Part shown: positions 350 through 53,203 of the stretch, in pieces
Position numbering within the stretch: the stretch's first letter is position 1
How the letters are laid out: every line of letters begins with the position of its first letter
Sequence record: MG655270.1
Length of the DNA: 64,000 nt
Direction: 5' to 3' (one strand)
The notes under the pieces: generated by a model
What the model saw: only the letters and a program-made list of their open reading frames with translations
Database searches by the model: none
Told to the model about the DNA's origin: nothing
Made by a program: the position numbers and the translations under genes

Positions 350-382
350 GGTAGGCGGGAAACCGCCTACCTTGTTTATGCC
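350..382 (+). terminator. Hairpin + TTATGCC element after chmA
   Basis: GGTAGGCGG-GAAA-CCGCCTACC, then TTGT and TTATGCC. Confidence 0.7.
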
Positions 383-422
383 CACTTTATTTTTTAGTAG
401 TACGTAAAAAGGAAAACCGGTA

Positions 423-1910
423 ATGATGCATGAAATGCAAGCAGCGCAACCGGCACTCGTGCAAGAAGGTGGTTTGACGGCCGTTGTGGGAAACCATGAC
501 CAACACTTCTTCATGTTGTCGCGTCCACCCATCATTGCTAACGACTATGACCTCTCGATCGAAGCTGACCGACAAGCCCTGAATAACCATCTGCGGGTGA
601 GTTATGATACGGACATGTTCAGTGTCAAGCCGAAGTGTCAGTGTGGGCATACCAGCGGCGGTGATAAAGTTGGAAAGCTGTGTGTAAAGTGCGGCACGAA
701 GGTCACCACTGTAACCGAAGAAGAGATTGAGTCTCAGCTCTGGTTACGCAAGCCTGAAGGTGTAAAGGGCTTCATTAACCCACAGTTATGGTTATTGTTC
801 TTTGAACCGTTTAATGTCAAAGGGTTCAATCCGATGGAGTGGTTTGCAGACCGTTCCTATACTCCAGCCAAGGGGGGTATGGATTACAAGAACAAAGATG
901 TGTACAAAGTCTGTGCGGACATGGGTATCGAACGAGGCATAAACTCCTTGTACGATAACTTTGACGCTATCGTAACAAACCTACTTAACTCTCCGGTCGT
1001 GCGTGATCAGGTCACGTCACAAGAAGTGCTGCGTCAACGTTCTGATTTGTTTATTAAATACCGTGATCGTTTCTTCTGTGAACACTTACCGATGCCCTCC
1101 AAGCTGATGTTTGTGGTGGAATCCAATGCAACCGGTCGCTATGCTGCCCCTGAGATGAAACTGGCTCTGGATGCAGCGTTGACCGTCTGTTCAGCAAAAC
1201 GCCAACTGCATACGGTGCGGGATGTGCGCTTTAATGAAAGCATTGCGATTAAAGTGGTCCGTCAGATCTCGAAGTTCTATGCGACACATGACAGTGACAA
1301 CTTTGCGGGTAAGTTAGGGTTACTGCGTAAGAATATTGCCGGGGCAAAACATCCGTGGACTGGTCGTTGTGTGATTACCTCGCATACTGGCGATCATGAC
1401 ATGGATGAAGTGATCCTACCACGTTGTTTGGCGATCCCGATGTTGAAATACCACATCATCAACAAACTGCGTCGTCGGAACTACACCCCAACACAATGCC
1501 TCAAACTGATCCAGGCGGGTATTAAGCAAACCATCCCAGTGATCGATGAGGTGTTAGATGAACTCCTCGCAGAAAGCCCTACAGCGTCGATACGGGTATA
1601 TGTGCAACGAAACCCAACCCTGCGTTGGTTATCGAACCGCCGGTTCCATTGCCGAACCATCAACCGTGATCCAAATGACATCAGTATCCGTATCAGTACC
1701 TTATCTATCAAATCCTCGAATGCGGACTTTGATGGCGATGAACTGAACGTGATGTTACAACTGGATAACGTCTCAGCGAACTATGCGGAAGCGTTCGGTT
1801 CACACAACTGTGTGCTGGACATGAACACCCCGCTGAAGATCTCTGGTGACGTGGGCCTGCCGGGTACATTGATCTCGACCATGAACCGTTGGATGTACAG
1901 TAACGACTAA
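423..1910 (+). CDS. Non-virion RNA polymerase beta' subunit, N-terminal half (phiKZ gp55-like)
   Basis: Catalytic NADFDGDE motif, N-terminal Zn finger (CQCG...CVKC), and GKLGLLRKNIAG...GRCVIT and QRNPTL motifs. Confidence 0.93.
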   Translation: MMHEMQAAQPALVQEGGLTAVVGNHDQHFFMLSRPPIIANDYDLSIEADRQALNNHLRVSYDTDMFSVKPKCQCGHTSGGDKVGKLCVKCGTKVTTVTEEEIESQLWLRKPEGVKGFINPQLWLLFFEPFNVKGFNPMEWFADRSYTPAKGGMDYKNKDVYKVCADMGIERGINSLYDNFDAIVTNLLNSPVVRDQVTSQEVLRQRSDLFIKYRDRFFCEHLPMPSKLMFVVESNATGRYAAPEMKLALDAALTVCSAKRQLHTVRDVRFNESIAIKVVRQISKFYATHDSDNFAGKLGLLRKNIAGAKHPWTGRCVITSHTGDHDMDEVILPRCLAIPMLKYHIINKLRRRNYTPTQCLKLIQAGIKQTIPVIDEVLDELLAESPTASIRVYVQRNPTLRWLSNRRFHCRTINRDPNDISIRISTLSIKSSNADFDGDELNVMLQLDNVSANYAEAFGSHNCVLDMNTPLKISGDVGLPGTLISTMNRWMYSND

Positions 1911-1916
1911 ACTTAT

Positions 1917-1938
1917 GGCCAGGGGTAATTCCCTGGCC
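1917..1938 (+). terminator. Hairpin after nvRNAP beta'N
   Basis: GGCCAGGG-GTAATT-CCCTGGCC. Confidence 0.6.
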
Positions 1939-1961
1939 TTATTACCGACGGGATATTTTTT

Positions 1962-2609
1962 ATGGATAATTTGCTCGAAAGGGGACGGTTTCTTCTTGAG
2001 AACACCGCAGCCGCCATGAACCCTTATCCTTACACGATCATTTTCGTCACCACCCCAATGGATTGGGATGCCGTGGTCACTGCCATGCATGCTAATGATC
2101 CTGCAGCAAACATCATTAAACATAAAGGACAGTTCACGACCCAACGTGATTACCAATATGTCATTTATCGAGATGAACATTGGTATATCGCTGCCGCGAA
2201 CATGGGAAGTCTACCTTACAACCATTACTACACCGGTGCGATGCTCGGCATTGCCATGGACCTGGGGCATGAGATTATTATCGATATCAGCAACCGCATC
2301 GGGAATGACGCGACTGCGGCCCCAGCGATAACGGCGATCATGCACGATTGGTTTATGGTTAACTGGCGGGAAGCTGTGTGCGTGACCCACGAGAACTACC
2401 TGGCGTTTATTCCGGACGATGATTACTTGTACTTGAGTAACAACAAAAAGATACTCGGGCAGGTGATTCGCGCACAAGAACAACTGGGATCACCTTTAGC
2501 ATTGACGTCGGCGTTACAGCGTGAGTGTCAACGTCTGATGAACACCCAGGTGGTGATCGCACCCACAGGCTGGAACGCTACTACGTATTACAGCGGAGGT
2601 GAGGTATGA
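1962..2609 (+). CDS. Hypothetical protein, degenerate HExxH-family paralog 1
   Basis: Aligns by eye with the next two ORFs (IIFVT..DWD.V, HKGQFT, L.RE...MN..VVI...GW..TTY). The motif reads HEIII. Confidence 0.75.
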   Translation: MDNLLERGRFLLENTAAAMNPYPYTIIFVTTPMDWDAVVTAMHANDPAANIIKHKGQFTTQRDYQYVIYRDEHWYIAAANMGSLPYNHYYTGAMLGIAMDLGHEIIIDISNRIGNDATAAPAITAIMHDWFMVNWREAVCVTHENYLAFIPDDDYLYLSNNKKILGQVIRAQEQLGSPLALTSALQRECQRLMNTQVVIAPTGWNATTYYSGGEV

Positions 2610-3283
2610 CGTTTGCTGAAGCTGAACAGTATATTTACAGTCTCAGTCAAGACGGCGGGGTCTATAAACAAGGGTTCATCTTTGTGTTTGATCCCGAGTC
2701 GTGGGATAAGGTGAACAGGGCGTTGGATATCCTGGACAATAACCGCGGGATCTGGGGGAAGAACGTTGGACAGTTCACCACCGCCGGCATGACGTCCTAC
2801 GGGCCGGTGTCAGCGAGGCTTAAAGGGTATATCGTTATTGCCGTCCATTTCACGGGTGAGCGTAAGCTGTTCAATCCAGGGTATCTGCAGCATGTGTTGA
2901 ATACCGCCACCCATGAGTTGGTCCATGCTGCTCAGTTCGCTGTTCGGGCGCAGAGCTACCATGATCCGTTGATTGCTGTAGAACCACTGGCTTACCTGAC
3001 CGGTTGGTTAATGGAGAAATGGATTTATGCAGTGTGGGAGAAGTTTAACGTCACCATCTCAGTAACCCCTGCTACTACCGGTCCACTGTCGTACAACATC
3101 CTGTTTGACCTGTTGTATCGGTTCAATGAACAGCGGCTGGCGCACCGGATGGGTGATCTCACCATGACACAGATTCAGAGTGCTTTAGTTAGGGAGTCGA
3201 TTAACAGCTTGAATAACGTGGCAGTGGTAAACGATATCGGTTGGTCATCAACGACGTATCTTGATGGAGTTAACAAGAAATGA
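2606..3283 (+). CDS. Putative zinc metallopeptidase-like protein, HExxH paralog 2
   Basis: ATHELVH followed by EPLAYL; ATGA overlap with the previous ORF. Confidence 0.7.
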   Translation: MTFAEAEQYIYSLSQDGGVYKQGFIFVFDPESWDKVNRALDILDNNRGIWGKNVGQFTTAGMTSYGPVSARLKGYIVIAVHFTGERKLFNPGYLQHVLNTATHELVHAAQFAVRAQSYHDPLIAVEPLAYLTGWLMEKWIYAVWEKFNVTISVTPATTGPLSYNILFDLLYRFNEQRLAHRMGDLTMTQIQSALVRESINSLNNVAVVNDIGWSSTTYLDGVNKK

Positions 3284-3906
3284 AGATGCCGGTCAGTCAG
3301 TATGTAGATAAGTTTCTATTAAGGCTGTTCCCTTATCCGCGGCATTTTATCTTTGTCACCAGTGTTGCGGATTTTGATGCGGTGGTTACCGAACTGGCAC
3401 GTCGGCAGACTGCGGCTGGGATTAGCAATAAATGGCTGAGTCACAGAGGGCATTTCAAAGGGAATGGGATTTGTGCTTCGGGGAATCAGATCTGTGTATT
3501 AGGTGCGCTTTATGATACCGGCACGCAGCTCAGCCCAGCTAACATCGCCGGGACGATCGGTACCATGCAACATGAAATCCAACACATGTTACTGCATACC
3601 TGTGCGCAGATTGGTTATAACCCGATGCGCGAACACGAACCGTTTACGTATTTAACGAAGTGGGTGTTTGAGTTGTTCCTGGCGTTTATGCGTAATTACC
3701 ACGGCGTGATGATCACCGATGTGCAGCGGCAAGATACTGGTATGCTGAGTCGGTTGCAGAAGGGAGGGGCTTTTGAGTTACTGCACGCCCTGCCCGTTGA
3801 AAATGTTCGAGATTCATTAGCAAGAGAATCCCGTGCATTATTAAACAACGCGGTGGTCGTCAGCCCTATTGGCGCATCCCGTTCCACAACCTATTTCGAA
3901 TTATAA
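3280..3906 (+). CDS. Putative zinc metallopeptidase-like protein, HExxH paralog 3
   Basis: MQHEIQH followed by EPFTYL; ATGA overlap. Confidence 0.7.
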   Translation: MKMPVSQYVDKFLLRLFPYPRHFIFVTSVADFDAVVTELARRQTAAGISNKWLSHRGHFKGNGICASGNQICVLGALYDTGTQLSPANIAGTIGTMQHEIQHMLLHTCAQIGYNPMREHEPFTYLTKWVFELFLAFMRNYHGVMITDVQRQDTGMLSRLQKGGAFELLHALPVENVRDSLARESRALLNNAVVVSPIGASRSTTYFEL

Positions 3907-3913
3907 TTAACCC

Positions 3914-3931
3914 GGCCAGGGAAACCTGGCC
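3914..3931 (+). terminator. Hairpin after the HExxH trio
   Basis: GGCCAGG-GAAA-CCTGGCC followed by TGTATG. Confidence 0.6.
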
Positions 3932-3954
3932 TGTATGTCAAAAAGGAAAGTAAC

Positions 3955-4656
3955 ATGGGTATGTATACCGGCGTCTCATTTCGTTTGAAGGTCAGAAAAA
4001 ATGCACCCTTGCCGGTGTTAGAGTTCATGGATAAGTTCTTCATGGAAGGTGAAACACTGCAAGCAGTGAAAGACCTACAGAAAGAAACGGGTATCCAGTT
4101 CCAATCCACAGCCATTGCATTACCGGGTGATCAGTTTCATTACAGTGAAATTGCCGATATGACCATGATGGTTCGCGGGCACTCTTCCAGTTTTGAAAGC
4201 TGGTACTGGCGTGTTAAAGAAGATAAGGGCGATTACTGGTTGTATGAAACCCGCGCCAATACCAAACGCCCTCACCATGACCTGGCCGCCAACCTTATCC
4301 AGGCATTATTACCATGTCTGGTTATCGAAGAAGGTGAGGTGGTGCTGCGCTCCATTTATGAAGACAGCGCCCAAGAACGCGTTCTGGCATTGGTAAATGG
4401 CAAGATTATTGAGGAACGTGGTTATGAGTACGAGGATGAATACAATAGCCCGTGGAATGAAAAGGCTCCAATAGATTATGTCAAGGGTGATTTTGGTGCA
4501 ATTGCACATATTCGCATCACCGAGGAAGAAGAGTTCACGCCACCTTGGACTTTACAGGAACTGCGGGCCGGTGAAGAAAAAGCACGGTTAGAGAAAGAAG
4601 CCGAGCATGAACGGATACGAGCAGAGGGTGGTGGTTTCGGTTTCGGTGGTTGGTAG
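3955..4656 (+). CDS. Hypothetical phage protein
   Basis: 233-aa ORF with RBS AAGGAA; acidic C-terminal third. Confidence 0.75.
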   Translation: MGMYTGVSFRLKVRKNAPLPVLEFMDKFFMEGETLQAVKDLQKETGIQFQSTAIALPGDQFHYSEIADMTMMVRGHSSSFESWYWRVKEDKGDYWLYETRANTKRPHHDLAANLIQALLPCLVIEEGEVVLRSIYEDSAQERVLALVNGKIIEERGYEYEDEYNSPWNEKAPIDYVKGDFGAIAHIRITEEEEFTPPWTLQELRAGEEKARLEKEAEHERIRAEGGGFGFGGW

Positions 4657-4721
4657 TTTTAATTAATTTAACCTGACGTACAGCACAGCAAACAATAATC
4701 CAATTTAAATAAGGGTAGTTT

Positions 4722-5423
4722 ATGAACGGTATGAAGATGATGATTGGTTCCCTGCCACTGAGCAGCATGATGGGTGGTAGTCGTTCAGACGCAGGGACTT
4801 TCAATCCTGCACCGCACGCTGCCCCTTTCCGCGCAGTTGGTGAGTACATCGCAGATGCGGCATTTGAGGATCGTGGGGTATTGGTTTCTGCAGACGGGAT
4901 CGTTGCTACTGTGCGCGCCAAAAAGATGACCTTCCAGGAAGCCGCAGATGCCCGCGGTGCAGCCACCGGACTGTATGCCATTATGTTCCCAGTCACTAAC
5001 GGGGCGAAAGACGATACTGTCGTGATCACCACTACCAGTCAGGATGTGTTGTTTAACTTACTGGCAGTTGAAGATCTCCCTGATGAACTGTTTGTGCAGT
5101 TTGGTCTGGCAACGAATGCCGCCGCGGTGAAAGCCATGACCAATGACAACAACGACCATATCCGGGTACTGTCCAATGCCGGCGGTATCGCCCCAAGCAA
5201 TACCTCACCGTCCCATTTGATTGTGGATAAGCAGCGCAATCTGATCATTGGTCATATTGTAAAAGAAGGTGATGATCAAGCAGACTTCAGTATCTTCGCC
5301 GCCTCACGTAAATCCAAATCATCACAGGACTACATTATCAACGTGAGTACCGATGATAGTGATATCATCAAGCATATCGTCCAGGCTACAGTGGAAGAGA
5401 TTGCACTGGGAGACGCGGTCTAG
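4722..5423 (+). CDS. Hypothetical protein
   Basis: 233-aa ORF with RBS AAGGG; colinear with its neighbours. Confidence 0.7.
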   Translation: MNGMKMMIGSLPLSSMMGGSRSDAGTFNPAPHAAPFRAVGEYIADAAFEDRGVLVSADGIVATVRAKKMTFQEAADARGAATGLYAIMFPVTNGAKDDTVVITTTSQDVLFNLLAVEDLPDELFVQFGLATNAAAVKAMTNDNNDHIRVLSNAGGIAPSNTSPSHLIVDKQRNLIIGHIVKEGDDQADFSIFAASRKSKSSQDYIINVSTDDSDIIKHIVQATVEEIALGDAV

Positions 5424-5491
5424 TCTGTAATTGCAGACAAAACCGGCGGATGATATAGCACCAGAAATTAACCGGAAGTAGGAGTAAAAGA

Positions 5492-6139
5492 ATGTCAGTC
5501 ATGACAGGTGGTTTTGGCGCAATCAATGCGCTAATGTCCAACGGCCGCCCGACTCAGGGTGCCATGGAGTATTTTAACAATCAGTATCAGGGCATGCTGC
5601 AAGCAGCGCAGCAAGTGGGTAGTGTGGCGATGCAGCAGATCTATCAGATCGCAACACACACCTATGAGAACCTGATGCAGACCCGTCCGTGGGAACTGGC
5701 AGAAGCAGCGTTGCGTCAAACAGTGCACATGTTTGACCCGAACACGGTTCGTCAGCTTCTCAACCTGGCTGATATGCAAACCGCCAAACCGATCATGCAG
5801 CGGTGGGTGATGGCGCAACCGGATATCCGTCAGATGTATCATCAGCAGCGCATCGATGGTTACAGCGAAACGTATGAAGATGCCCAACCAGGGATGGTAG
5901 GTACAGACCATTATGATTATCGTCGTGCAGCAAACGGCATGTTGCAGTTTGCACACACTGAAGAGGTGCCGATGGCGTCTTGGCAGGCGACGACCTATTA
6001 TGAGCGTCTGGTAGAAGGTGATAACGAACTGTCGTTCCATGAGAAGCGTGACATCCATGTAACCTGGGATGCGTGTCTGAATCTGATGAACACACAGGCG
6101 TATGATCCAACCTCCATCTTCAACATGAAGCTGGCGTAA
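5492..6139 (+). CDS. Conserved Chimalliviridae core protein (position of phiKZ gp59; possibly Imp3-like)
   Basis: Strong RBS AGGAG and 215 aa. The gp59/Imp3 equivalence is a synteny inference only. Confidence 0.6.
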   Translation: MSVMTGGFGAINALMSNGRPTQGAMEYFNNQYQGMLQAAQQVGSVAMQQIYQIATHTYENLMQTRPWELAEAALRQTVHMFDPNTVRQLLNLADMQTAKPIMQRWVMAQPDIRQMYHQQRIDGYSETYEDAQPGMVGTDHYDYRRAANGMLQFAHTEEVPMASWQATTYYERLVEGDNELSFHEKRDIHVTWDACLNLMNTQAYDPTSIFNMKLA

Positions 6140-6147
6140 GTTAATCG

Positions 6148-6175
6148 GAGGAGGGGTAGCCCTCCTCTTATGCCG
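6148..6175 (+). terminator. Hairpin + TTATGCCG element
   Basis: GAGGAGGG-GTAG-CCCTCCTC-TTATGCCG. Confidence 0.7.
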
Positions 6176-6187
6176 TTTGAGGGTAGC

Positions 6188-6412
6188 ATGGCAAAAAAGG
6201 AACTCACGATGAAGCGACTTCAGATAGACATCTCTGAACAGGGCTTTAGCAAACTTAATGCACTCAAGGTGAAAATGGAAACCACTGCCATGGGTAGCGT
6301 TGTCAGCCGCGCCTTATCGATTACCGATCGTTTGTTCACCGCCAAGGAGAAAGGCAGTAAGATCCTGATCGTGGATAAAGATGGTAATGTCACCGAAATC
6401 GAATTACTGTAG
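6188..6412 (+). CDS. Ribbon-helix-helix (CopG/Arc-like) DNA-binding protein
   Basis: KRLQIDISEQGFSKLNALK...MGSVVSRAL fits the beta-strand/helix/helix RHH pattern. Start placed at ATG 6188 after GAGGG. Confidence 0.7.
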   Translation: MAKKELTMKRLQIDISEQGFSKLNALKVKMETTAMGSVVSRALSITDRLFTAKEKGSKILIVDKDGNVTEIELL

Positions 6413-6420
6413 AGGTTAAC

Positions 6421-6648
6421 ATGGCTTGGTCCAAACGCCGTGCAAAGAAACGCATCATTCACTTACGTGGTTTTCATTATCGTGTTCAATCACGTAGTAT
6501 CGCAATCTGGGAGCAGTATCGCGAATATCATCAAAATCGACCATTTGGATCTGGCGTTGGTTTATTGATGTTACTTGACCCTGAAACTGGTTGTCCAATA
6601 GGAGCTCATCGTGGCCTTAAGCAAAACAAAAATAAAGCGTCGTACTAA
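6421..6648 (+). CDS. Small basic hypothetical protein
   Basis: RBS GAGG; Arg/Lys-rich N-terminus. Confidence 0.55.
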   Translation: MAWSKRRAKKRIIHLRGFHYRVQSRSIAIWEQYREYHQNRPFGSGVGLLMLLDPETGCPIGAHRGLKQNKNKASY

Positions 6649-6895
6649 TGCGCTGTATAACTACAAAACGCTGGTTGAACGCATTAGCTATAAATGCATG
6701 ATAGCGCACATTGATGCTCAGGGTATCAAGCTTGAATTGAACCGCACGGGTTCGTCAATTAAAAGTGAAGACATTCCTGCTGCAAAAGAAGCCCGTCTTG
6801 CATTGAAACGCGAAATCGTCCGTCTGCGGAATATCCAGGGGCGTCGTCGTATCGTGAATGCCGGTAAGATCAAAGCGGCAATCAGCCAGTATTAA
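6611..6895 (+). CDS. Small basic hypothetical protein
   Basis: 94-aa ORF ending just before a canonical terminator; start uncertain. Confidence 0.55.
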   Translation: MALSKTKIKRRTNALYNYKTLVERISYKCMIAHIDAQGIKLELNRTGSSIKSEDIPAAKEARLALKREIVRLRNIQGRRRIVNAGKIKAAISQY

Positions 6896-6898
6896 TAG

Positions 6899-6927
6899 AA
6901 GGGACTTCGGTCCCTTTATTTTTTTTT
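6899..6927 (+). terminator. Canonical intrinsic terminator
   Basis: AAGGGAC-TTCG-GTCCCTT followed by a T tract. Confidence 0.85.
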
Positions 6928-6955
6928 GTCTTGAATAATGAAATTTTTACGCTGT

Positions 6956-6988
6956 AGAAAATCTTAGACCTATATAACGGCACTGATA
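6956..6988 (+). promoter_or_regulatory. Phage (probably early, vRNAP) promoter, copy 1
   Basis: AGAAAATCTTAGACCTATATAACGGCACTGATA matches copies 2 and 3. Confidence 0.75.
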
Positions 6989-7018
6989 GAGTAATCTAAA
7001 TTAACTTGTGGAGTCGTC

Positions 7019-7549
7019 ATGAAAAACACTACTTTTCTAATTGAGACCCTGAAACGTACCTTGGAAGAGCTGGACCAGGCAACGTTATCAACTGAAGAAA
7101 AAATTGAATTAACCACCATGGTTGAGAAAGAACATTTTGCTAAGCTGTTCGGTGTCCGCGCAGAAGAAACCACTCAGTTAAGTGAGCGCGATTTCTCTAA
7201 ACTGACCGGTTATCAGTACAACAGTGTTTACGCGGGGTTAGATTTGGTTGGTAATTTTGACTGGGTGATCACGGCGGATGGCACAGTCGTAACAAGAGAA
7301 ATGCCTCATCACGGCAGTAACCATTGGTTGCCACCGCGCAGGCAATTTATATTCAGACTGATCGATGAAGGTCGTGAAATATTTAATGAAGGCACTAGAC
7401 TGCTTGTTATCAGAATTGAGAACACCATCACCAAAGAGGTCTTTTCAATTAACTTTGAAGTTGCTGATATTCAAATCGGCAGTGCGGTTGTTAAAATGGT
7501 TGAGCGTTATCTGTTCGATTATTACAGGGTCAGCGTCAAGAAACTGTAA
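7019..7549 (+). CDS. Early hypothetical protein
   Basis: Follows the promoter motif at 6956-6988; RBS GGAG. Confidence 0.75.
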   Translation: MKNTTFLIETLKRTLEELDQATLSTEEKIELTTMVEKEHFAKLFGVRAEETTQLSERDFSKLTGYQYNSVYAGLDLVGNFDWVITADGTVVTREMPHHGSNHWLPPRRQFIFRLIDEGREIFNEGTRLLVIRIENTITKEVFSINFEVADIQIGSAVVKMVERYLFDYYRVSVKKL

Positions 7550-7561
7550 AATATGAGTTGC

Positions 7562-7594
7562 AGAAAATCTCAGACCTATATGACTGTGGTGATA
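7562..7594 (+). promoter_or_regulatory. Phage (probably early) promoter, copy 2
   Basis: AGAAAATCTCAGACCTATATGACTGTGGTGATA. Confidence 0.75.
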
Positions 7595-9002: not shown

Positions 9003-9036
9003 TGTAAGCTGTAGTGTATTGGTCACCTCATGACCG

Positions 9037-9069
9037 GAGCTCACCCTAACCGGTGGGCTCTTTTTTTTT
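9037..9069 (+). terminator. Canonical intrinsic terminator closing the early cassette
   Basis: GAGCTCACC-CTAACC-GGTGGGCTC followed by T9. Confidence 0.85.
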
Positions 9070-9127
9070 GTCTTCTTTTTTTTTTGTTCGGGGATTATAT
9101 GTAGTCCATATTAGCTAAGAGGACATT

Positions 9128-12125: not shown

Positions 12126-12896
12126 ATGGCTGGTCCACAGCGTCAATTTAAAGCTCGTGAAAAATCTTACTTGAGCGAGTACTCGATGAACCTTCAGGGC
12201 CCGGTGCAAGCTGGCGCTCAGTTCCCTGCTGAATTCCGCATGGCCTTTGCAGCCAACAAAGTGGCCATTCAGGTTGAAACCAAAAACCGTGATAACAAAA
12301 ATAACGGTCGCTTTGAAATCGTTGTTCCTTATCTGGGCGCTATCGGTGTGCTGAATACGATCGACAAGCTTATTCAGGACAAAGCACGCAGTAAGCTGCA
12401 ATACAAAGTGAAAGACTTCGTTTACTTCGGTAAAGGTAACAAGTCTGACTCACCAATGATCAAAGGCACCCTGACTGTAGGGCGTGATAACGAAGGCTGT
12501 CTCTATATCGGCATGTCCGGTAAAGACATCACCCCAATCAAATTCATCTTCGCCCTGCCGGCGCATGATGAACTGTGCGATGACTCAGGTCAGCGTCTGG
12601 GTGATGCTGAGCACTCTGAGTTTGCTGCGAAGAACTTCGTGGTCGGTTACCTGGGCCTGCTGCCAGTGGTGATGGGTATTCACTATACCCCACCTGAACC
12701 GAAGAACCCAGATGGCGGTAATGGCGGTGGCGGTGGTCAAGGTGGTGGCGGCTGGGGCGGTAATGGCGGCGGGAACCGTGGCGGTGGTAATGGCGGGGGA
12801 AACCAGTACAGCCAAGGCGGCAATCAGGGCGGCGGGAACGCCTCTGGTTCTGGTAGCAGCGGCGGCGGTGACTTCGCAGATGACCTGCCTTTCTAA
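12126..12896 (+). CDS. chmC: Nucleic-acid-binding protein with Gly/Asn-rich tail; probable ChmC (phiKZ gp67-like)
   Basis: About 190-aa folded domain plus a G/N/Q low-complexity tail ending DFADDLPF; lies just upstream of the sigma-like and picA genes, where ChmC is expected. Confidence 0.65.
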   Translation: MAGPQRQFKAREKSYLSEYSMNLQGPVQAGAQFPAEFRMAFAANKVAIQVETKNRDNKNNGRFEIVVPYLGAIGVLNTIDKLIQDKARSKLQYKVKDFVYFGKGNKSDSPMIKGTLTVGRDNEGCLYIGMSGKDITPIKFIFALPAHDELCDDSGQRLGDAEHSEFAAKNFVVGYLGLLPVVMGIHYTPPEPKNPDGGNGGGGGQGGGGWGGNGGGNRGGGNGGGNQYSQGGNQGGGNASGSGSSGGGDFADDLPF

Positions 12897-12948
12897 ATAG
12901 ACAGGACGATGAATTCAGCATAAGTCATTGTCTGGGTTCATCCACAAC

Positions 12949-12979
12949 AGAGGAGGGTGAAAACCCTCCTCTTGTGCCG
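12949..12979 (+). terminator. Hairpin + TTGTGCCG variant after chmC
   Basis: AGAGGAGGGT-GAAA-ACCCTCCTCT-TGTGCCG. Confidence 0.65.
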
Positions 12980-13297
12980 TCCACGGACTGGGCTATAGCT
13001 CACGCTTACTCCCCAGGGTATGGGCGATTCAAACGCCGACATTTCAGGAAGAATACGCGCAAGCGACCCCCACGGCCATGTAAGAATAAAAGTAAGTTGA
13101 TGAAGGTGGCTCAGAGTAAGTTGGGTTATGCGATCATGACAGGCAGGGTAATTAGGCAGGCGGTATGTGATGAGTGTGAGGCGGATGAACGTATCGAGCC
13201 TTTGCAAGTCAATTATGCTAAGCCGTATATCGTGCTGTGGCTTTGTCCACGTTGTCATGCTGACTGGTACCTGACAAATGAGCCGGCGTACAGCTGA
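12974..13297 (+). CDS. Degenerate HNH-like zinc-binding protein
   Basis: AIMTGRVIRQAVCDEC...EPLQVNYAKPYIVLWLCPRCHADW follows the small phage HNH pattern C..C..EAHHxDYSKPLxVxWLCxxCH, but HH is replaced by LQ. Start uncertain. Confidence 0.55.
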   Translation: MPSTDWAIAHAYSPGYGRFKRRHFRKNTRKRPPRPCKNKSKLMKVAQSKLGYAIMTGRVIRQAVCDECEADERIEPLQVNYAKPYIVLWLCPRCHADWYLTNEPAYS

Positions 13298-13727: not shown

Positions 13728-13832
13728 TTTTTATTGCTGGATGCGGTAAACCCGCTCCAGCCCTTATGCCGCCTGTAATATCGTACATTATTCTACTATC
13801 TATTAGAGGAACAAATAATCTTAAATATTTAC

Positions 13833-13846
13833 AAGCCTACATTATC
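13833..13846 (+). promoter_or_regulatory. Variant phage promoter upstream of the nvRNAP sigma-like gene
   Basis: AAGCCTACATTATC; similar to 18974 and 37739. Confidence 0.55.
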
Positions 13847-18575: not shown

Positions 18576-18603
18576 CGGCATAAGGAGAGGCTACGGCCTC
18601 TCC
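18576..18603. terminator. Bidirectional hairpin with TTATGCCG on the minus strand
   Basis: CGGCATAA-GGAGAGGC-TACG-GCCTCTCC at a convergent junction. Confidence 0.75.
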
Positions 18604-18613
18604 TCTTTCAGAG

Positions 18614-24671: not shown

Positions 24672-24755
24672 ACTGACTGTGTAAAAGACCAGGGGGCTTA
24701 CTCCTTGGTCTTTTATGCTTTCTTTCCTTTTCTTTTTGTTAAGGATACACAGCTT

Positions 24756-29362: not shown

Positions 29363-29573
29363 AGTTAACATCGAGCAGGCCAATCGTTATGAGGGGTCTA
29401 CCGATGATTTGGTCCAGCAAGCTAATGATCGTGGTTTTCTCCAGGGGATTCGTATCACTTCTGGCGAGGACATCGATCCAAGCATTTGGACACCTGAGAA
29501 GATCGAAAAGTTGAAAGCTGCACTTCGACATATTCGTGACTCAGAACAACGCATCAAAGGTAGCCAGGGGTAA
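29301..29573 (+). CDS. Hypothetical protein (true start probably GTG 29343)
   Basis: Ends at the hairpin 29562-29591; GAGGG lies upstream of GTG 29343. Confidence 0.55.
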   Translation: MTVMCIWTSREGSGVDTNPTEVNIEQANRYEGSTDDLVQQANDRGFLQGIRITSGEDIDPSIWTPEKIEKLKAALRHIRDSEQRIKGSQG

Positions 29574-29591
29574 CACCCTGGCTTTATGCCG
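29562..29591 (+). terminator. Hairpin + TTATGCCG element
   Basis: AGCCAGGG-GTAACA-CCCTGGCT-TTATGCCG. Confidence 0.7.
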
Positions 29592-31298: not shown

Positions 31299-31410
31299 GT
31301 AATATCAGGCAGGGGGACTACTCTCTGCCTTTATTTTTTGTGGTATTCTGCCACAGAAAACTACTGGCCATACTACCAGTGGTATTCACTCAATAGACTG
31401 CGAGGAATAA

Positions 31411-32385: not shown

Positions 32386-32436
32386 CGGCATATAGGCCCT
32401 CCATTACGGAGGGCCTTTTATGACATCTTTTTTTTT
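32386..32436. terminator. Bidirectional hairpin at a convergent junction
   Basis: CGGCATAT-AGGCCCTCC-ATTAC-GGAGGGCCT-TTTATGAC followed by a T tract. Confidence 0.75.
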
Positions 32437-39291: not shown

Positions 39292-39319
39292 AGGAGAGCT
39301 TCGGCTCTCCTTTTATGCC
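39292..39319 (+). terminator. Hairpin + TTATGCC after tad2
   Basis: AGGAGAGC-TTCG-GCTCTCCT-TTTATGCC. Confidence 0.7.
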
Positions 39320-39335
39320 CATTAAGGAACATGTC

Positions 39336-44505: not shown

Positions 44506-44557
44506 CAGCATAAGGAGAGGCCTCGCGCCTCTCCTGTTTATGCCGTCTTTTTTTTTT
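44506..44557. terminator. Bidirectional hairpin flanked by TTATGC(C/T)G on both strands
   Basis: CAGCATAA-GGAGAGGC-CTCGC-GCCTCTCC-TGT-TTATGCCG followed by a T tract. Confidence 0.75.
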
Positions 44558-45652: not shown

Positions 45653-45682
45653 CGGCATAACGGAGCAGGCAACGCCTACTCC
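45653..45682 (-). terminator. Minus-strand hairpin + TTATGCCG
   Basis: On the minus strand: GGAGTAGGC-GTT-GCCTGCTCC-G-TTATGCCG. Confidence 0.65.
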
Positions 45683-46700: not shown

Positions 46701-46757
46701 GCATCATCCTTCTAGAATGAGTACCTTGACGACCTACTCGCGTCATAGCATTCCAGC

Positions 46758-46801
46758 CGGCATAAGGGAGTGGATACCCTGACCGTAGCCAAGGTATCCA
46801 C
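46758..46801 (-). terminator. Minus-strand hairpin + TTATGCCG after the DNA polymerase gene
   Basis: GTGGATACC...GGTATCCAC stem with CGGCATAA at 46758-46765. Confidence 0.65.
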
Positions 46802-46809
46802 GTGGTGCG

Positions 46810-48531
46810 TCAAGCCGCAGCCATGAAATCGATCTCGATATGTTTTTCTACCATGAAGTCTTTCAGTAACGTAATGGTCTCAGGTGCTTTGTACAACTTA
46901 CGCGCAAGTTCACCGGCATTGTTCATACCACCGGCTGCCAGGTTAACTGCTACCTGACGATACTCCGTATCATCCAATCCTTCGATCTGGGTCATCTCAA
47001 TCCAGGTGGTTTGTTTCCCCACATTCATGATGACCGTACCGGTCGGATATGCCCCTTCTACGTCGATGTCGTTCGTACCTGTACGGACATAGGACTTGAC
47101 GTTCGGCAGTTCTTTAAACATCGCTTTGCCGTTTAAGGCAACCAGCTCTGTTGGGAGCATAACGATCCAGCCACCGAGACCCTGAATGTGATCATCCAGT
47201 TCGGTACGCATCTGATCCGATGTGGTACCCCAGATATACCCTTCTTTCATCACATCGTAATGCATCGCCTCAGCGATACGTGTCGGCTGCGATATAAAGT
47301 TACGGTAGTCTGACACCCCGCAGAACGTTGGAACCGCTACAGAGAGATCTGAGGTCTTCTCGTCCATCATTTCAACCACGATACAGTCGAAGATGTTATA
47401 CATCACATATTCGTACTTGTAGTTGCTCTGCATGAACTCATGCCAGTCCGCCCCGTGGTACCCTTCGGCTTCACTGAACTTCATCTTGGTCACACCGAGT
47501 ATTTTCTCAGCGATGTTATCCAGTTTGTAGTTCAGCTCTTTACCGTTCATGGTGCGCAGGTAGTAATAGGCTGACATCGATTCAGCCCAACGGAACGACG
47601 CAGGGGCATTGACGTAAGGCCACTTCTCATAGTTAGCTAATGATGTCTTGGTGACTTCTTTGCCATCATTTTTTACTTTGTGGGTTTTGCCCTCGTAGTA
47701 ATAAACGTTACGGTACTCTTGTGGTACCGAGGGATCGCAAATAACGTCAGCAGGGTTGATGCCGGCATTAGTTAATGTTTGGGTAAGGACCTTGTAGTCG
47801 AACTCGAGTACGTTCCAACCAGTGATAAAATCAGGCATCCACTCATGGGCGCGTTCAAACAGTTTGACAAAGCCATCCGCCGCACTGTCAACCAACACGA
47901 ACTCTGGGTTGGTGATGCTGCGTTTGGTTGCCCAGTCACCCAGGTATTTATCCCAGGCCAGTTTCAGCTTCTGATGAATACGCTCATCCGCTTCCCCGCC
48001 AAAGTAGCGACGGATCACAAAGGTAAAGGTGCGTTCTTTAAAGGTTAAGGATGCCATGATCGGCTCACCCTTATACCGCTCGTCTACCATTTCGGTTTCG
48101 ATATCGAACACACTGATTTTGTACGGTGTAAAGGTATCAGGAAACTTCGCTTCATACATCGCTTTGACAATCGAAGAGGGTTCGATGTCAGCGCCATACA
48201 CGTACGGACTGCGACACACCCGACGCAACTGCTGATCAGTAGCGCCTTTTCCCAGCATCTTTGAGATGTGGTTAGGAAGATCCCACTGCGGGCAACTGAA
48301 CTTCTGCAGCTTGGATAGCTCTTCGTAATCTTTCTTATCCTGGTGATTGCGGTACGCCGGTTTGGTGAGGTAGTAATCACGCTTCATGTCTTTGATGATG
48401 CGGGTGTGGGGTTTGCTGTTCCCGTTCTCGTCAATGACATTCTCTTTCACGAAGATGATGTCTGATTTGCCGCGCAGAGAAAGGGTATAGATCGCGTGCT
48501 TGCATTCGAAACGAAGGTTATTGCTGCTCAT
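46810..48531 (-). CDS. Family B DNA polymerase, N-terminal/3'-5' exonuclease half of a split enzyme (phiKZ gp82-like)
   Basis: ExoI FDIET, ExoII GWNVLEFD, YKLDNIA, ExoIII YNIFDC and pol motif A DIDVEGAYP near the end; motifs B and C are absent. Confidence 0.9.
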   Translation of the reverse strand: MSSNNLRFECKHAIYTLSLRGKSDIIFVKENVIDENGNSKPHTRIIKDMKRDYYLTKPAYRNHQDKKDYEELSKLQKFSCPQWDLPNHISKMLGKGATDQQLRRVCRSPYVYGADIEPSSIVKAMYEAKFPDTFTPYKISVFDIETEMVDERYKGEPIMASLTFKERTFTFVIRRYFGGEADERIHQKLKLAWDKYLGDWATKRSITNPEFVLVDSAADGFVKLFERAHEWMPDFITGWNVLEFDYKVLTQTLTNAGINPADVICDPSVPQEYRNVYYYEGKTHKVKNDGKEVTKTSLANYEKWPYVNAPASFRWAESMSAYYYLRTMNGKELNYKLDNIAEKILGVTKMKFSEAEGYHGADWHEFMQSNYKYEYVMYNIFDCIVVEMMDEKTSDLSVAVPTFCGVSDYRNFISQPTRIAEAMHYDVMKEGYIWGTTSDQMRTELDDHIQGLGGWIVMLPTELVALNGKAMFKELPNVKSYVRTGTNDIDVEGAYPTGTVIMNVGKQTTWIEMTQIEGLDDTEYRQVAVNLAAGGMNNAGELARKLYKAPETITLLKDFMVEKHIEIDFMAAA

Positions 48532-48631
48532 GATGAATGATAATCCTATGTCAAAACACTACAAAGTGCACCAGTGTTTAATACGCGTTATAACATCAGG
48601 CGTGCAACTACATTTATACAAAGGAGATCAC

Positions 48632-49894
48632 ATGATCCTATCTAGCGGTCTGGAAGCGATTAGCTTTCAAAAGAATCCGCTCTTTTACAAACAGCTGGTT
48701 GTCGAATTCGGCCGTCTGATGGAACTTGCTAAAGCCAACGGTAAGAAGCGCCTGACCGAAGAGATGATGGCGCAATCTAATCTGGCGAAGATCACCATGG
48801 CGAACACCGGTATCAAAGTCTCGCCTGGGGTGGATACCCGCATGCAGTGTAATGCGTACGTTATGATCCCAAGTATCAACTCCTATCACGTCTTCAATGA
48901 CCGCATGCGTCAGATCTTCTCAGGTTATGCCGAATCGTTTGAGCAGTTTCGTAAAGCCAACGACGTGCTGATTGGGTTGGTTGATCTGCAGAACTCCAAA
49001 GTGGGCGGGGTCTTCTCGACTATTGATCACCGCATCTGTCTGTCGTACGACATGATGACCGACTACGACATGACTCCGGGTGAAGTCGCCGCCATCTACA
49101 TGCATGAAGTCGGCCATGCTTTTACCTTCCTGGAGATGCTGCATTATACCGCTACCACTAACCTGGTGCTGACGGCCGGCATTGAAGCGATCATCAAATC
49201 AGAAACTTCTCGTAAGCATGTCATCTTAAGTGATATCGAAAACTCCTTAGGGATTAAGATCGATAATAAAGATGAACTGGTCGCTTACGACAAGTATGAA
49301 GATTATGCTGTCACGATCCTGTCGAAGTACAACCGCACCCTAGCGGCAGCCCTGGGTTCACCGGCACACGATGAATCGATGTCTGAGCAGATGGCGGATA
49401 TGTTTGCCACCCGACATGGCGCGGGATTGGATCTGGCGCGCGGATTGTCCCGTATTCACAAATATTACAATTCACCGAAGTTTAAGTTTGCCCGCTATCT
49501 GGAGATCTTTGTTGGCATCCTGCAGACCATGGGTTTGTCCCTGGTGTTCGATGTGCTGGGAGTGATCGTTGTCCTGACTGTCGGTAACTTCTTTGGTGGG
49601 ACGTATGACCGGGCGAAAGACCGTTTCATCCGCATGCGTAATGAGATCGTGGTCGGCCTGAAAGATGAAGAGATCAGTGCAGCTGACCGCAAACTCTTGA
49701 TCAGTCATATCGCCGAGCTGGACAAGATCATTGCCCAGGCCAAAAACGAAAGCTCCTTTGTCGAGCAGCTGTCCCTGGTGGTGCGCGCCAGCCAGCGTGA
49801 GCGTTATGCCAGCAAGTACCTGCAAAAGGATCTTGAAGCCCTTCTTAATAATCCGCTCTATGTCAGTGCGGCCAAACTGAAAACATTGCAATAA
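48632..49894 (+). CDS. Virion structural protein with HExxH zincin-like motif (phiKZ gp83-like)
   Basis: Start after AAGGAG; SGLE site at the N-terminus; MHEVGH...EQMADMFA. Confidence 0.7.
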   Translation: MILSSGLEAISFQKNPLFYKQLVVEFGRLMELAKANGKKRLTEEMMAQSNLAKITMANTGIKVSPGVDTRMQCNAYVMIPSINSYHVFNDRMRQIFSGYAESFEQFRKANDVLIGLVDLQNSKVGGVFSTIDHRICLSYDMMTDYDMTPGEVAAIYMHEVGHAFTFLEMLHYTATTNLVLTAGIEAIIKSETSRKHVILSDIENSLGIKIDNKDELVAYDKYEDYAVTILSKYNRTLAAALGSPAHDESMSEQMADMFATRHGAGLDLARGLSRIHKYYNSPKFKFARYLEIFVGILQTMGLSLVFDVLGVIVVLTVGNFFGGTYDRAKDRFIRMRNEIVVGLKDEEISAADRKLLISHIAELDKIIAQAKNESSFVEQLSLVVRASQRERYASKYLQKDLEALLNNPLYVSAAKLKTLQ

Positions 49895-49907
49895 GGATTC
49901 ATCAGAA

Positions 49908-50414
49908 ATGATTATTGACGTAGCAGAATTAAAGAAACAGATCGTGTCGGTGCGTTCTATTGCAGAGATCCCAACTACCCTGCGTACTAAACTGATTGAA
50001 ACCGGTCTGGCCCGTGCGGTAGCGTATGGTGTTGATCTGCCAAAAGAGCTGGTCGGTAACCCGGTCTCCTATTTCGCCAGCAACGCCACTGATGCTAAGC
50101 AGGCACTGGCGGTGATCAACGAAACTAACGTGATCAACATCTCCCGTATCCTGTCACTCGCCACCATCATCTGGCAGGCACGCTACAACATGGTTTATCT
50201 GCCGGCCACTCGCGAGTCCATGGAGTTGACTCATCAGGTATTGTCCGATCAACGCGAATGGTTGTTCGATGCAGAGCAGCAGGATTTCCTGTCAGCGACC
50301 ATTGGCGACGGTACTGTGCAAGACAGCCTGAAGCTGGCCCTGTTAAACTTCACCTGCCCGGCTGTGATCAACCCTAACCAGGTAGCACCAGTCACCACCG
50401 CTGACGAGGAGTAA
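49908..50414 (+). CDS. Putative virion structural protein
   Basis: RBS AAGGA; within the late structural operon. Confidence 0.7.
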   Translation: MIIDVAELKKQIVSVRSIAEIPTTLRTKLIETGLARAVAYGVDLPKELVGNPVSYFASNATDAKQALAVINETNVINISRILSLATIIWQARYNMVYLPATRESMELTHQVLSDQREWLFDAEQQDFLSATIGDGTVQDSLKLALLNFTCPAVINPNQVAPVTTADEE

Positions 50415-50416
50415 TC

Positions 50417-51883
50417 ATGTCTATTGATCTGATCGCTTCCTTTATCGACGATTCGGGCAATGTCCCGATGACGGCGCTGACCGTGGTAAAGAAAGAGAAC
50501 GACGAAGCCAACGCACAACTGCCGAAACAGGTAGCGATGCTGAAAGCCTCTAACGAACGTATCGTTGAACTTCAGTCTGTGATTGAACGTGTGCGCCGTG
50601 AAGGCATGAGCCGTGAAGTCGCCGCGATCGTTGCCTCGATTGCACCCGAAGCGTTGCCGGTTGGCTACGGTGCTGAAGGTTTCACTGAGCAACCCTCAAA
50701 GCTTGGGATGGCTGCTGGTCTGGAATCGATCACCGCCTACGTGATTGATGGTATCAAACGTCTGATTGCGTTCCTGATCGATAAGGCCAAGAAAGCCGCT
50801 GCCTTTATTGTGGATCAGTATCGTCGTCTGACGGGCATTGCTCCCACTGCGTACAAGATCGATCGTCGTGCTGCGTACCTTACGGCGATGTCTGCCCGGT
50901 TTGCTCAGCACTTCGGTACGGATCTGGCGACCCTGTTAGAGCAGGATATCAATGCCGGCTTTACCAGTATCGAAAGCACCCGCATGGTATTGAGCGGTAT
51001 GTTTGCTGATGCGGAAGTGCTGCAGGCGGATCTGTCTAAATATGGCAAGCACATCAATGTCATGTCCAAACAGATCGAAGCGTTACTGGCAGATGCGCCA
51101 GCACGTGTGGTGCGGGTCAATGCGATTGTTAATGATGTCACGGTATCGCGCAATGGCAGCAACGATCGCAGTGCAGAGATCCTGCGTCTGATCGACACCC
51201 GTAACCTCGATGCCCTGGTCAGTACGTTGCGCAGCGTCAGTAAGTTACTGGTCAGCAGCCCGATGTACAAATCCACTGGCACCGGTAAAGACGGCAAAAT
51301 CAAACAGACTATCCTTGAGCAGTTAAACAGCGATGGTTTCCGTGAGATGATGTCCGGCCTTTCCATGGCGGCTAATGCTGGCATGACCCACACCATGGAC
51401 ATGACCGATGCCTCGGCGATCATTCGTTCACGTAATCTGGCTGAGGCTGTTAAAGAGCTCACCAATTACGAAGAAGTGAAGAAGCGTTCACTGGACGACC
51501 TCAAGTCTGCTACTGGTTCGATCAACAGCAACAAATATGTGCAGGCCGCTGAACAGTCACCGGGTGATGACCCGACCATGGCAGCTGTGGTGCAGTTTAA
51601 CCAATACTGGGATGATGTCACGACCGCCGTAAAAGTGGCACAGGACATCACCACCGCCTACGCGGAGACGGTATTCAAACTGCAGCTGTTCTCGGTGCGT
51701 TGTCAAGACCTGGCGCTGGTACAGTGGTCCGCTAACCCAGCCAATGCCGGTCTGGCAGAAGCCAATGCCGCGACTGAACGTCTGCAGGCGGTGGTCAAGC
51801 AGTATCTGGATAAGGTCGTGAAGAACACCACGGGCTTGAAAGGTGCGCTGGATGACCTCGGCAAACTGGTCAATCAACTGTAA
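50417..51883 (+). CDS. Putative head/inner-body (ejection) protein
   Basis: Propeptide-like N-terminus with AGLES followed by IxxLIAFL; typical of phiKZ-like head proteins. Confidence 0.7.
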   Translation: MSIDLIASFIDDSGNVPMTALTVVKKENDEANAQLPKQVAMLKASNERIVELQSVIERVRREGMSREVAAIVASIAPEALPVGYGAEGFTEQPSKLGMAAGLESITAYVIDGIKRLIAFLIDKAKKAAAFIVDQYRRLTGIAPTAYKIDRRAAYLTAMSARFAQHFGTDLATLLEQDINAGFTSIESTRMVLSGMFADAEVLQADLSKYGKHINVMSKQIEALLADAPARVVRVNAIVNDVTVSRNGSNDRSAEILRLIDTRNLDALVSTLRSVSKLLVSSPMYKSTGTGKDGKIKQTILEQLNSDGFREMMSGLSMAANAGMTHTMDMTDASAIIRSRNLAEAVKELTNYEEVKKRSLDDLKSATGSINSNKYVQAAEQSPGDDPTMAAVVQFNQYWDDVTTAVKVAQDITTAYAETVFKLQLFSVRCQDLALVQWSANPANAGLAEANAATERLQAVVKQYLDKVVKNTTGLKGALDDLGKLVNQL

Positions 51884-51892
51884 GGAAATCGC

Positions 51893-53149
51893 ATGGAATC
51901 CACATTACTTCAAACGATCAATGAAACCACGGAGTTGTGTGACTCTTTGATTTCGTTGTCACAACGTCTTGAGATGTTGGGTCCCATTGCTGCTGAGTCT
52001 GTTAACTTCGCAAAGATCCATGAATCGATTAACCTGAAGGTGGCGAAGATTGCCGCTTCGATGGAGTCGATTGAAGCTAACGGCATCAACCAGGAGGCAG
52101 TGTTAGAAATCAATACTGCCATGCCTGGTATCATTCCCAACACCATCCCTCTTAATGGATACACCAAAGCCCGCAGTCAGATGAATGTGGGGTTTGCCTT
52201 AGAGTCGTTGGAGTCAGGTAAAGCAGCAATGATCTCCGGTTCAGTAACAGGGATCGTGGCCGTGATCGTCAAACTGTTTCGTTGGGTTGTCATGACCATC
52301 AAGCAGTATGTCAAATCACGCCGTGATGCGAATCGTCTCGGTGTCTCTGTGACACAAGCGCTGCAACGTGCGGGAACGATCAACGAATACCTGTTAGAGC
52401 AGTTGGCGAAAACCCCTGAAGCCAAAGCCGCCCGTCCGGGCTTTGAATGGTTGGTATCGATCTGGCGTCCGCAGGCTGGGATCTTTAAGTTCAATGAAGA
52501 TGCACTGGTGCAGTGGTGGCCAGAACTCGTCAATGAACTGGAGTACGAATACAACCAGATCAGCAAGGCGTTTGAAACACTGCGTAGCGGTGGGTCGTTT
52601 GTCCCGAACATTGCGAAAGCACATCAGTCGCCCTCCATGAAGCGTTTCTTTGAAGCCTTACCGCAAGGGACGGATCGTCAAGGGAACATCGTTGAGGTAG
52701 AGCTGGCTAAGAAGCAGTTCCAGGAGAACCCACAGCGTGCGTTGTTCCAACTGGCTGAGCGTCTGCGCTACATGATCATGCGCGAGCCTAAATCAAAAGG
52801 TACTGACTTTGGGCAAGAGCTGATTTCAGTAGGTCGCAGTATTGAAGCCTACACCAATGTGGATCGTCTGGTGTTTGATCAGCTGAATACCTACGATACC
52901 AACAATCGATTAGGGAAACTGGAAGAGGCGTTTGGTGCGTTGTATAAGCAAGTACAAGCCACACGCTACACTGCAGACAAAGCCCTGGTTGATGAGTTCG
53001 TGGGTTACCTGAACCGTTATTCAGAAAAGCTTAACTGTTTCGTGCAACTGATCACCATTGTGAGTTACCTGGATAGCTGTAGTTTCCAGATCCTTGACAA
53101 TGTCTCCAAAGCCACCATGAAGTACGTTGATATTGCTGCCAGTAATTAA
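51893..53149 (+). CDS. Putative head/inner-body protein, paralog of the previous gene
   Basis: Shared SIE.xG...E....I....P..IP....GFT/YT...S...ALES architecture. Confidence 0.7.
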   Translation: MESTLLQTINETTELCDSLISLSQRLEMLGPIAAESVNFAKIHESINLKVAKIAASMESIEANGINQEAVLEINTAMPGIIPNTIPLNGYTKARSQMNVGFALESLESGKAAMISGSVTGIVAVIVKLFRWVVMTIKQYVKSRRDANRLGVSVTQALQRAGTINEYLLEQLAKTPEAKAARPGFEWLVSIWRPQAGIFKFNEDALVQWWPELVNELEYEYNQISKAFETLRSGGSFVPNIAKAHQSPSMKRFFEALPQGTDRQGNIVEVELAKKQFQENPQRALFQLAERLRYMIMREPKSKGTDFGQELISVGRSIEAYTNVDRLVFDQLNTYDTNNRLGKLEEAFGALYKQVQATRYTADKALVDEFVGYLNRYSEKLNCFVQLITIVSYLDSCSFQILDNVSKATMKYVDIAASN

Positions 53150-53151
53150 AT

Positions 53152-53203
53152 CGGCATAAAGGCCTGGCCTTCCTTGCGGAGGGCCAGAGCCTTGCTTATG
53201 CCG
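53152..53203. terminator. Bidirectional hairpin bracketed by the perfect inverted pair CGGCATAA...TTATGCCG
   Basis: Lies at the convergent junction of the head operon and the baseplate gene. Confidence 0.75.

Follow-up and report, generated by a model that had tools for sequence, protein, structure and literature searches.

In the phiKZ transcriptome study, the 61 terminators obtained by ONT-cappable-seq (ONT, Oxford Nanopore Technologies) consist of a stem-loop followed by a TTAT region, with the consensus 5'-BCCYCCCCHWWDGGGRRGGBYTTATKYYGT-3' (Putzeys et al. 2024, microLife, PMC10914365). The report on phage 201phi2-1 describes a motif A at 59 terminators that strongly resembles the phiKZ motif, a second motif that lengthens the stem, and eight termination sites whose activity was confirmed with a terminator-trap reporter in uninfected Pseudomonas chlororaphis (PMC11512511). 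The late promoter of phiKZ is 5'-TATG-3' with the G as +1, which is required, yet not enough by itself, for initiation by the non-virion RNA polymerase (nvRNAP) (Yakunina et al. 2015, PMC4666361); the beta-like subunit recognizes TATG on the non-template strand, in a pocket under the beta-lobe. Here, we describe an element composed of a GC hairpin and the sequence TTATGCC(G) in a 64,000-nucleotide stretch of DNA (the window), which is identical (100%) to bases 186001-250000 of Erwinia phage vB_EamM_Mortimer (MG655270.1). We consider it highly probable that these elements are transcription terminators of the type common to phiKZ-like nucleus-forming jumbo phages, in which a hairpin is followed by (U)UUAUGYYG in place of the U-tract. 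In Agricanvirus, the element represents a terminator class that had been described before in phiKZ and 201phi2-1, and the class itself is not new.

Mortimer is a phiKZ-like jumbo phage of the genus Agricanvirus, similar to Ea35-70 and RAY, with a genome of 273,914 bp of which 6.5% is non-coding. Beta or beta' subunits of RNA polymerase (RNAP) are annotated in the window as gp228, gp254, gp255 and gp277, split as in the phiKZ-like lineage, and the gp254 protein has about 30% identity to the RNAP beta genes of phiKZ-like phages. The genome paper of this phage family dismissed the motifs found by MEME/FIMO as non-significant, our literature search on the Agricanvirus genus found no paper describing the element, and Rfam gave no match within the window.

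Enrichment of the motif and its association with GC hairpins

Genome-wide counts were made on the full public Mortimer record, and dinucleotide shuffles (100 for the window) were used as the control for enrichment. The window contains 10 copies of TTATGCCG, compared with 1.58 ± 1.13 in the shuffles, none of which reached 10, and the whole genome contains 42 copies, compared with 7.4 ± 2.2 expected. An enrichment over shuffled controls had been named as a check in the original prediction, which was made from the letters of the window, and all coordinates given there were correct when we read them back. The tenth copy in the window (48925) lies within a gene, has no hairpin and is at chance frequency.

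A hairpin was found 0-9 nt before TTATGCCG in about 37 of the 42 genomic copies, 29 of them by automatic scoring and 8 by eye where the scanner had merged or missed the stem. When 40 letter-permuted 8-mers were taken as the control for hairpin association, 10 of their 377 occurrences (2.7%) followed a hairpin. In the window, every listed copy has the predicted GC hairpin before it, with a folding energy of -16 to -30 kcal/mol and an end 0-6 nt before the motif.

With TATGC beside a hairpin as the search anchor, about 60 strand-specific copies were found genome-wide. The logo of the 54 intergenic copies has a pyrimidine-rich 3' stem arm, a T at -1 in 45 of the 54, and, after the anchor, C (39) or T (13) followed by G in 39 copies. 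TTATGCCG, TTATGCCC and TTATGCTG all fit TTAT-K-Y-Y-G. Among 32 intergenic hairpins that carry the motif with at most one mismatch, only 2 were scored as having a U-tract in addition; the motif-only sites carry UUAUGCCG where the canonical U-tract would stand, and a U-tract directly after the hairpin is confined to the extended-stem versions with T8-10 and to 6898 and 9036. The two U-tract terminators that had been set against the element (6899 and 9037) indeed lack the motif.

Distribution of the element relative to gene direction

Gene calls were constrained by the annotated minus-strand blocks of the record; start codons are approximate, and distances to start codons use the record annotation. 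The motif copies are located after stop codons. Among the intergenic hairpin loci at tandem junctions, the motif was co-oriented with the upstream gene at 23, opposite at 3 and on both sides at 2, an orientation bias with a one-sided binomial probability of about 4e-5 by our own arithmetic. At convergent junctions, 15 of the 18 hairpin loci carry the motif, on both sides of the hairpin at 8 and on one side at 7, and 3 carry none; the pair at 53152/53196 is a perfect inverted repeat about a single hairpin, as had been noted. At all 18 divergent junctions, in contrast, both the hairpin and TTATGCC are absent, and the sole near match is TATGCCC at the gp322/gp323 junction. Junctions that require termination but no initiation thus have the element, those that require initiation but no termination lack it, and in this respect it behaves as a terminator. 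The original prediction had also offered TATG late promoters licensed by the adjacent hairpin. This is disfavoured, since the motif is equally conserved at convergent junctions and the hairpin with its motif is absent at the divergent ones.

Comparison with the terminators of phiKZ and 201phi2-1

The Mortimer element and the phiKZ terminators share a GC-rich stem-loop followed by TTAT-K-Y-Y-G, and TTATGCCG is an exact fit to the TTATKYYG of the phiKZ consensus. In both phages the elements are intergenic, follow genes and are bidirectional at convergent gene pairs, and both phages have two split-subunit RNAPs. Some details are different. In Mortimer, K is nearly always G and YY is mostly CC, while phiKZ (37% GC) often has TGTY or TGTT, and the T at the end of the phiKZ consensus is only weakly conserved (20 of 54 copies).

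For 201phi2-1, we analysed the eight termination-site coordinates printed in the text of the paper (PMC11512511). All eight are on the plus strand at a hairpin followed by (T)TTATG-Y-[Y]-G, and the RNA 3' end maps to the second Y, which lies 8 nt past the stem, with the conserved G as the next base. Besides the hairpin and (T)TTATGYYG, Mortimer and 201phi2-1 have in common an inverted upstream copy of the motif that extends the stem at convergent sites, while their loop and stem families differ. Taken together, the distribution, the match to the phiKZ consensus and the eight 201phi2-1 3' ends within the motif support a terminator or 3'-end signal in place of the U-tract, which was the first of the two readings proposed for the window. 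The qualifier 'phage-RNAP-specific' attached to that reading is unsupported, because the 201phi2-1 versions terminated transcription in uninfected P. chlororaphis, in which the host RNAP was the only polymerase.

Compared with canonical Rho-independent terminators, the Mortimer element has the same GC hairpin, an AU-rich hybrid segment next to the stem and an expected release 7-9 nt downstream, and its extended versions are followed by genuine runs of 8-10 T. The difference is that the U-tract is replaced by a fixed heteropolymer whose distal half is GC-rich.

Several observations weigh against the assignment as a phiKZ-type terminator. The polarity of the stem is reversed: the 5' arm is purine-rich in Mortimer (AGGAGAGG...CCTCTCCT) and pyrimidine-rich in phiKZ (GCCCTCCC...GGGAGGGC), and the G(-10) context of phiKZ and 201phi2-1 is therefore absent in Mortimer. 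While the phiKZ terminators are transcript-mapped and those of 201phi2-1 were reporter-tested in the uninfected host, termination at the Mortimer sites is inferred from homology of the signal. Rapid endonucleolytic processing would look like true termination both in the 3' ends from ONT-cappable-seq and in the read-through of a reporter. A few copies oppose the local transcription, for example at genome positions 11338 (minus strand) and 121697 (plus strand). Finally, the core of the motif, TATG, is also the late-promoter consensus of the phiKZ nvRNAP, which may point to more than a terminator role.

Conservation in relatives

In the relative AH06 (about 82% DNA identity), the motif is retained while the coding flanks have diverged. 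The stems change in ways that keep them paired, with a compensatory C-G to T-A change at 32394, an A-U to G-U change at 39292, and a stem at 13737 that has been rebuilt and still pairs.

More distant relatives were examined with the identical hairpin scan on their DNA. The hairpin + TTATG architecture is present in phiKZ, 201phi2-1, Goslar, EL, RisingSun and AH06, and RSL2 is mixed. The G-Y-Y-G part is absent in PCH45 (Serratia), SPFM16 (Salmonella, Seoulvirus) and Aphrodite1 (Vibrio), so that the motif is widespread, not universal. All three of these phages encode RNAPs, and their hairpins end with YTTTTATT, TTAT plus a T run, or plain U-tracts. Judged from these genomes, TTAT seems to predate G-Y-Y-G or to have the wider distribution.

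Phage genera that infect three host genera carry the hairpin + TTATG signal; their GC contents span 37-49% and their stems have opposite polarities. This argues that conserved machinery reads the heteropolymeric tract, and that the tract is more than a weak U-tract. In Mortimer, the roughly 60 copies would mark the ends of transcription units in a 274-kb genome in which about 80% of the genes are 'hypothetical', and standard software, which recognizes terminators by a hairpin and a T run, would miss the motif-only sites. As compact and often bidirectional terminators, the elements could also serve in enterobacterial constructs.

Proposed mechanism of termination

Ordinary intrinsic terminators release the transcript 7-9 nt after the stem, and a pyrimidine at -1 with a G at +1 is the elemental pause signature of multisubunit RNAPs. 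We propose that the hairpin would fold in the nascent RNA directly behind the polymerase, and that the upstream RNA:DNA hybrid formed by the AU-rich proximal UUAU would be weak, like that of the proximal U-tract in intrinsic terminators. The G-Y-Y/G sequence (the slash marks the RNA 3' end) would then halt the enzyme 7-9 nt past the stem, where the RNA ends in a pyrimidine and the template specifies G next, and release would leave RNAs ending in ...UUAUGCC-3', that is, at TTATGCC/G. At convergent gene pairs, base pairing between the motif copies on the two sides of the hairpin could extend the stem; on the plus side of many convergent sites, the extended stem would run into 8-10 T and make a canonical terminator as well. 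The 3' ends at TTATGCC/G in Mortimer are predicted by homology, and the pausing mechanism and the polymerase or polymerases that respond are likewise inferred.

It is also conceivable, although we think it rather doubtful, that the polymerase pocket for the promoter TATG re-engages the motif during elongation, giving a sequence-specific pause that the hairpin converts to termination, with occasional re-initiation. If so, this terminator class would be defined by the polymerase's own promoter-recognition site, and the conservation of the motif across Pseudomonas, Escherichia and Erwinia phages despite very different GC contents would be explained.

Alternative explanations

The TATG in the motif could at the same time be an nvRNAP late promoter, at which a terminated or newly recruited polymerase restarts at the G. 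Tandem junctions would then contain coupled terminator-promoter units, and convergent junctions would give rise to antisense RNAs. This is consistent with the requirement for TATG, with G as +1, in phiKZ nvRNAP initiation (PMC4666361) and with its reading on the non-template strand by the beta-like subunit, as well as with the positions at tandem junctions, where the motif G lies 19-175 nt before the next start codon, about half of the copies at 19-47 nt. In addition, the gp322/gp323 junction, which is homologous to phiKZ P119L, has TATGCCCC 25 nt before the start codon. Nevertheless, we judge a dual role unlikely, and no observation calls for it. The motif is equally strong at convergent junctions, which need no promoter, and is missing from all 18 divergent ones. 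TATG is insufficient for phiKZ initiation, and phiKZ late promoters have no conservation beyond TATG and need no hairpin (PMC4666361), whereas the Mortimer element has a fixed extension (T before and CCG after), an obligatory hairpin upstream and a terminator-like distribution. A promoter of the phiKZ late type would be found in divergent regions too and without a hairpin, which is not what we observed for the hairpin + TTATGCC element. Six TATG copies at divergent junctions have no hairpin and are followed by T, G or A instead of CC; similarly, P119L of phiKZ, itself at a divergent junction, lacks a hairpin and continues with TAGAC after TATG. Start sites at the terminator motif are not reported in the available parts of the phiKZ (PMC10914365) and 201phi2-1 (PMC11512511) transcriptome papers, and several Mortimer terminators are followed by a separate promoter-like sequence, CCTAYATTAYC.

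The hairpin-free TATG copies at divergent junctions are at genome positions 18191, 109587, 112879, 221453 (window 35453), 243227 (window 57227), 259001 and 269898. Six of these seven are 30-39 nt upstream of the start of a minus-strand gene, and several of the genes are virion-structural; the seventh is 25 nt upstream of gp323, a gene in the position of phiKZ gp119. All seven are candidate nvRNAP late promoters, and the six upstream of minus-strand genes are better candidates than the hairpin-associated copies.

A still less probable explanation is RNA processing, in which read-through RNA is cut by an endoribonuclease at UUAUGCC/G beside the hairpin and the hairpin shields the 3' end so produced. 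Endonuclease sites typically have a conserved, AU-rich and single-stranded sequence next to a stem, a conserved G beyond the mapped 3' end is what a cleavage site spanning the cut would show, and neither 3'-end sequencing nor two-colour reporters can distinguish cleavage from termination. However, a 3' end 7-9 nt past the stem is the canonical geometry of hairpin-dependent termination, and a 3'-terminal pyrimidine with G next is the RNAP pause signature. The 201phi2-1 motif is functional in a different host without infection, and a phage nuclease is therefore not needed; moreover, the signal is common to Pseudomonas, Escherichia and Erwinia phages, whose host RNases differ.

A DNA-level element unrelated to transcription (such as a palindrome bound by a protein, a signal for recombination or packaging, or a small mobile repeat) can hardly be the explanation: some cassettes are identical over about 40 bp (for example at genome 27537, 156863 and 254486) and the phage encodes SbcCD-like hairpin nucleases, but most stems differ in sequence yet always pair and covary with AH06, the motif is strand-specific relative to gene direction, all its positions follow stop codons and none is at a divergent junction, and the RNA 3' ends of the relatives are at the motif. 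We also considered and rejected a translation start or re-initiation signal made of the motif ATG and AGGAG in the stem: the Shine-Dalgarno-like arm is paired within the stem and over 20 nt away from the ATG, and the convergent sites have no open reading frame (ORF) after them.

Putative terminators in the window

The hairpin-associated sites of the window are listed in Table 1.

Table 1. Putative terminators of the motif type and canonical terminators in the window. Positions are those of the window.
Position	Strand	Components	Context
349..383	+	hairpin 349-372; TTATGCCC 376-383	after gp227, 43 nt before gp228 start; -22 kcal/mol
3914..3939	+	hairpin 3914-3931; variant TGTATGTC at 3932	between gp231 and gp232; absent from the original prediction
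6148..6175	+	hairpin 6148-6167; TTATGCCG 6168-6175	after gp234
6898..6927	+	canonical terminator: hairpin, A, T9; no motif	contrast case
9036..9085	+	canonical terminator: hairpin, T9, T10; no motif	conserved in AH06
12949..12979	+	hairpin; TTGTGCCG at 12972	in ORF conserved with AH06_261; terminator role doubtful
13737..13771	+	hairpin; CCC; TTATGCCG 13764-13771	after gp248; motif kept in AH06, stem changed
18576..18605	-	hairpin 18582-18605; TTATGCCG 18576-18583; U-rich tract after the plus side of the hairpin	after gp252 (-), convergent with gp251 (+)
24679..24745	+	long hairpin including TTATGC (24713; variant TTATGCT), then U-rich tract	after helicase gp256
29562..29591	+	hairpin; TTATGCCG 29584-29591	after gp266, 24 nt before gp267 start
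31307..31340	+	hairpin; TTATTTTTTG at 31331, a TTAT-plus-U-run variant	after gp269; absent from the original prediction
32386..32436	both	bidirectional: ATATGCCG (minus side) 32386-32393; hairpin 32394-32416; TTTATGACA (plus side); T9 32428-32436	gp271 (+)/gp272 (-) convergent junction
39292..39320	+	hairpin; TTATGCCC 39313-39320	after gp280, 19 nt before gp281 start; conserved in AH06
44506..44557	both	bidirectional: TTATGCTG (minus side) 44506-44513; hairpin 44513-44535; TTATGCCG (plus side) 44538-44545; T10 44548-44557	gp288 (+)/gp289 (-) junction
45653..45682	-	hairpin 45662-45682; TTATGCCG at 45653	between gp291 (-) and gp290 (-)
46758..46801	-	hairpin 46770-46801; TTATGCCG at 46758	between DNA polymerase gp292 (-) and gp291 (-)
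53152..53203	both	bidirectional: CGGCATAA and TTATGCCG (53196) bracket hairpin 53164-53187	gp296 (+)/gp297 (-)

At 32418, TTATGACA is followed by T9, a similar site that was also absent from the original prediction. The sequences of the variant sites that had been listed read back correctly, but two of these sites call for a reservation. The hairpin at 12949-12979 has a doubtful role as a terminator and is not cleanly intergenic: the frame that runs through it is open over window 12884-13297 and is conserved at the protein level with AH06_261 (138 amino acids, annotated as a restriction endonuclease). Mortimer gp247, annotated only from 13100, is probably longer than annotated, with the GC hairpin within its coding sequence. 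The motif at 24713 is not conserved in AH06, which has TTACACA there and then a U-rich tract. Gene gp252 on the minus strand is also annotated in AH06, and the junction at 18576 is therefore a true convergent junction.

At a few loci, the ATG inside a TTATGCC that follows a hairpin coincides with an annotated or ORF-finder start codon, namely at genome 46553 (gp51), 50034 (gp57) and 53551 (gp63) and in the window ORF 6170-6412. These start codons are probably wrong, because a Shine-Dalgarno sequence and an ATG are found a few codons downstream.

T runs, promoter-like sequences and recurring cassettes

Runs of at least 7 T occur 24 times genome-wide, 19 of them on the plus strand, and most are 10-14 nt past a GC stem. 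The T8-11 runs have C before them and G or A after them (window 6919, 9061, 9076, 32428 and 44548; 19 sites genome-wide). Folding showed that at many sites the inverted pair CGGCATAA ... TTATGCTG folds, with a G-U wobble, into an outer stem whose end meets the T run. Because the outer stem abuts the T run, these sites are both motif-type and canonical terminators. An independent strand-biased element made of T8-10 runs was considered and set aside, as the runs are largely explained by the abutting outer stem of the inverted motif. The T-run sites that we checked follow non-structural plus-strand genes, while the terminators of virion genes that we checked, on both strands, have the motif only. 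This split may reflect a difference in temporal class or in polymerase.

The promoter-like sequence (A-rich)CCTAYATTAYC has 19 copies, all on the plus strand and 13 of them non-coding; copies occur upstream of genes as well as in divergent junctions. The sequence is similar to AAanTTACc, the middle-promoter element of phiKZ. Copies are found in the window at 13837 (CCTACATTA), 37743 and about 18990, and in the genome at 32720, 66089, 66954, 80318, 87595, 91298, 100721, 118638, 142274, 159782, 163919 and 273840. At genome 66064, 87571 and 273814, CCTAYATTAYC follows TTATGCCG by 17-19 nt to form terminator-promoter modules.

Near-identical cassettes of about 40 bp, which include the stem, the loop and both flanking motifs, recur in two sets, one at genome 27537, 156863 and 254486 (also 120838) and the other at 97625, 173579 and about 273001. 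They are found at different, mostly convergent junctions, which suggests that whole terminator modules have been duplicated or gene-converted.

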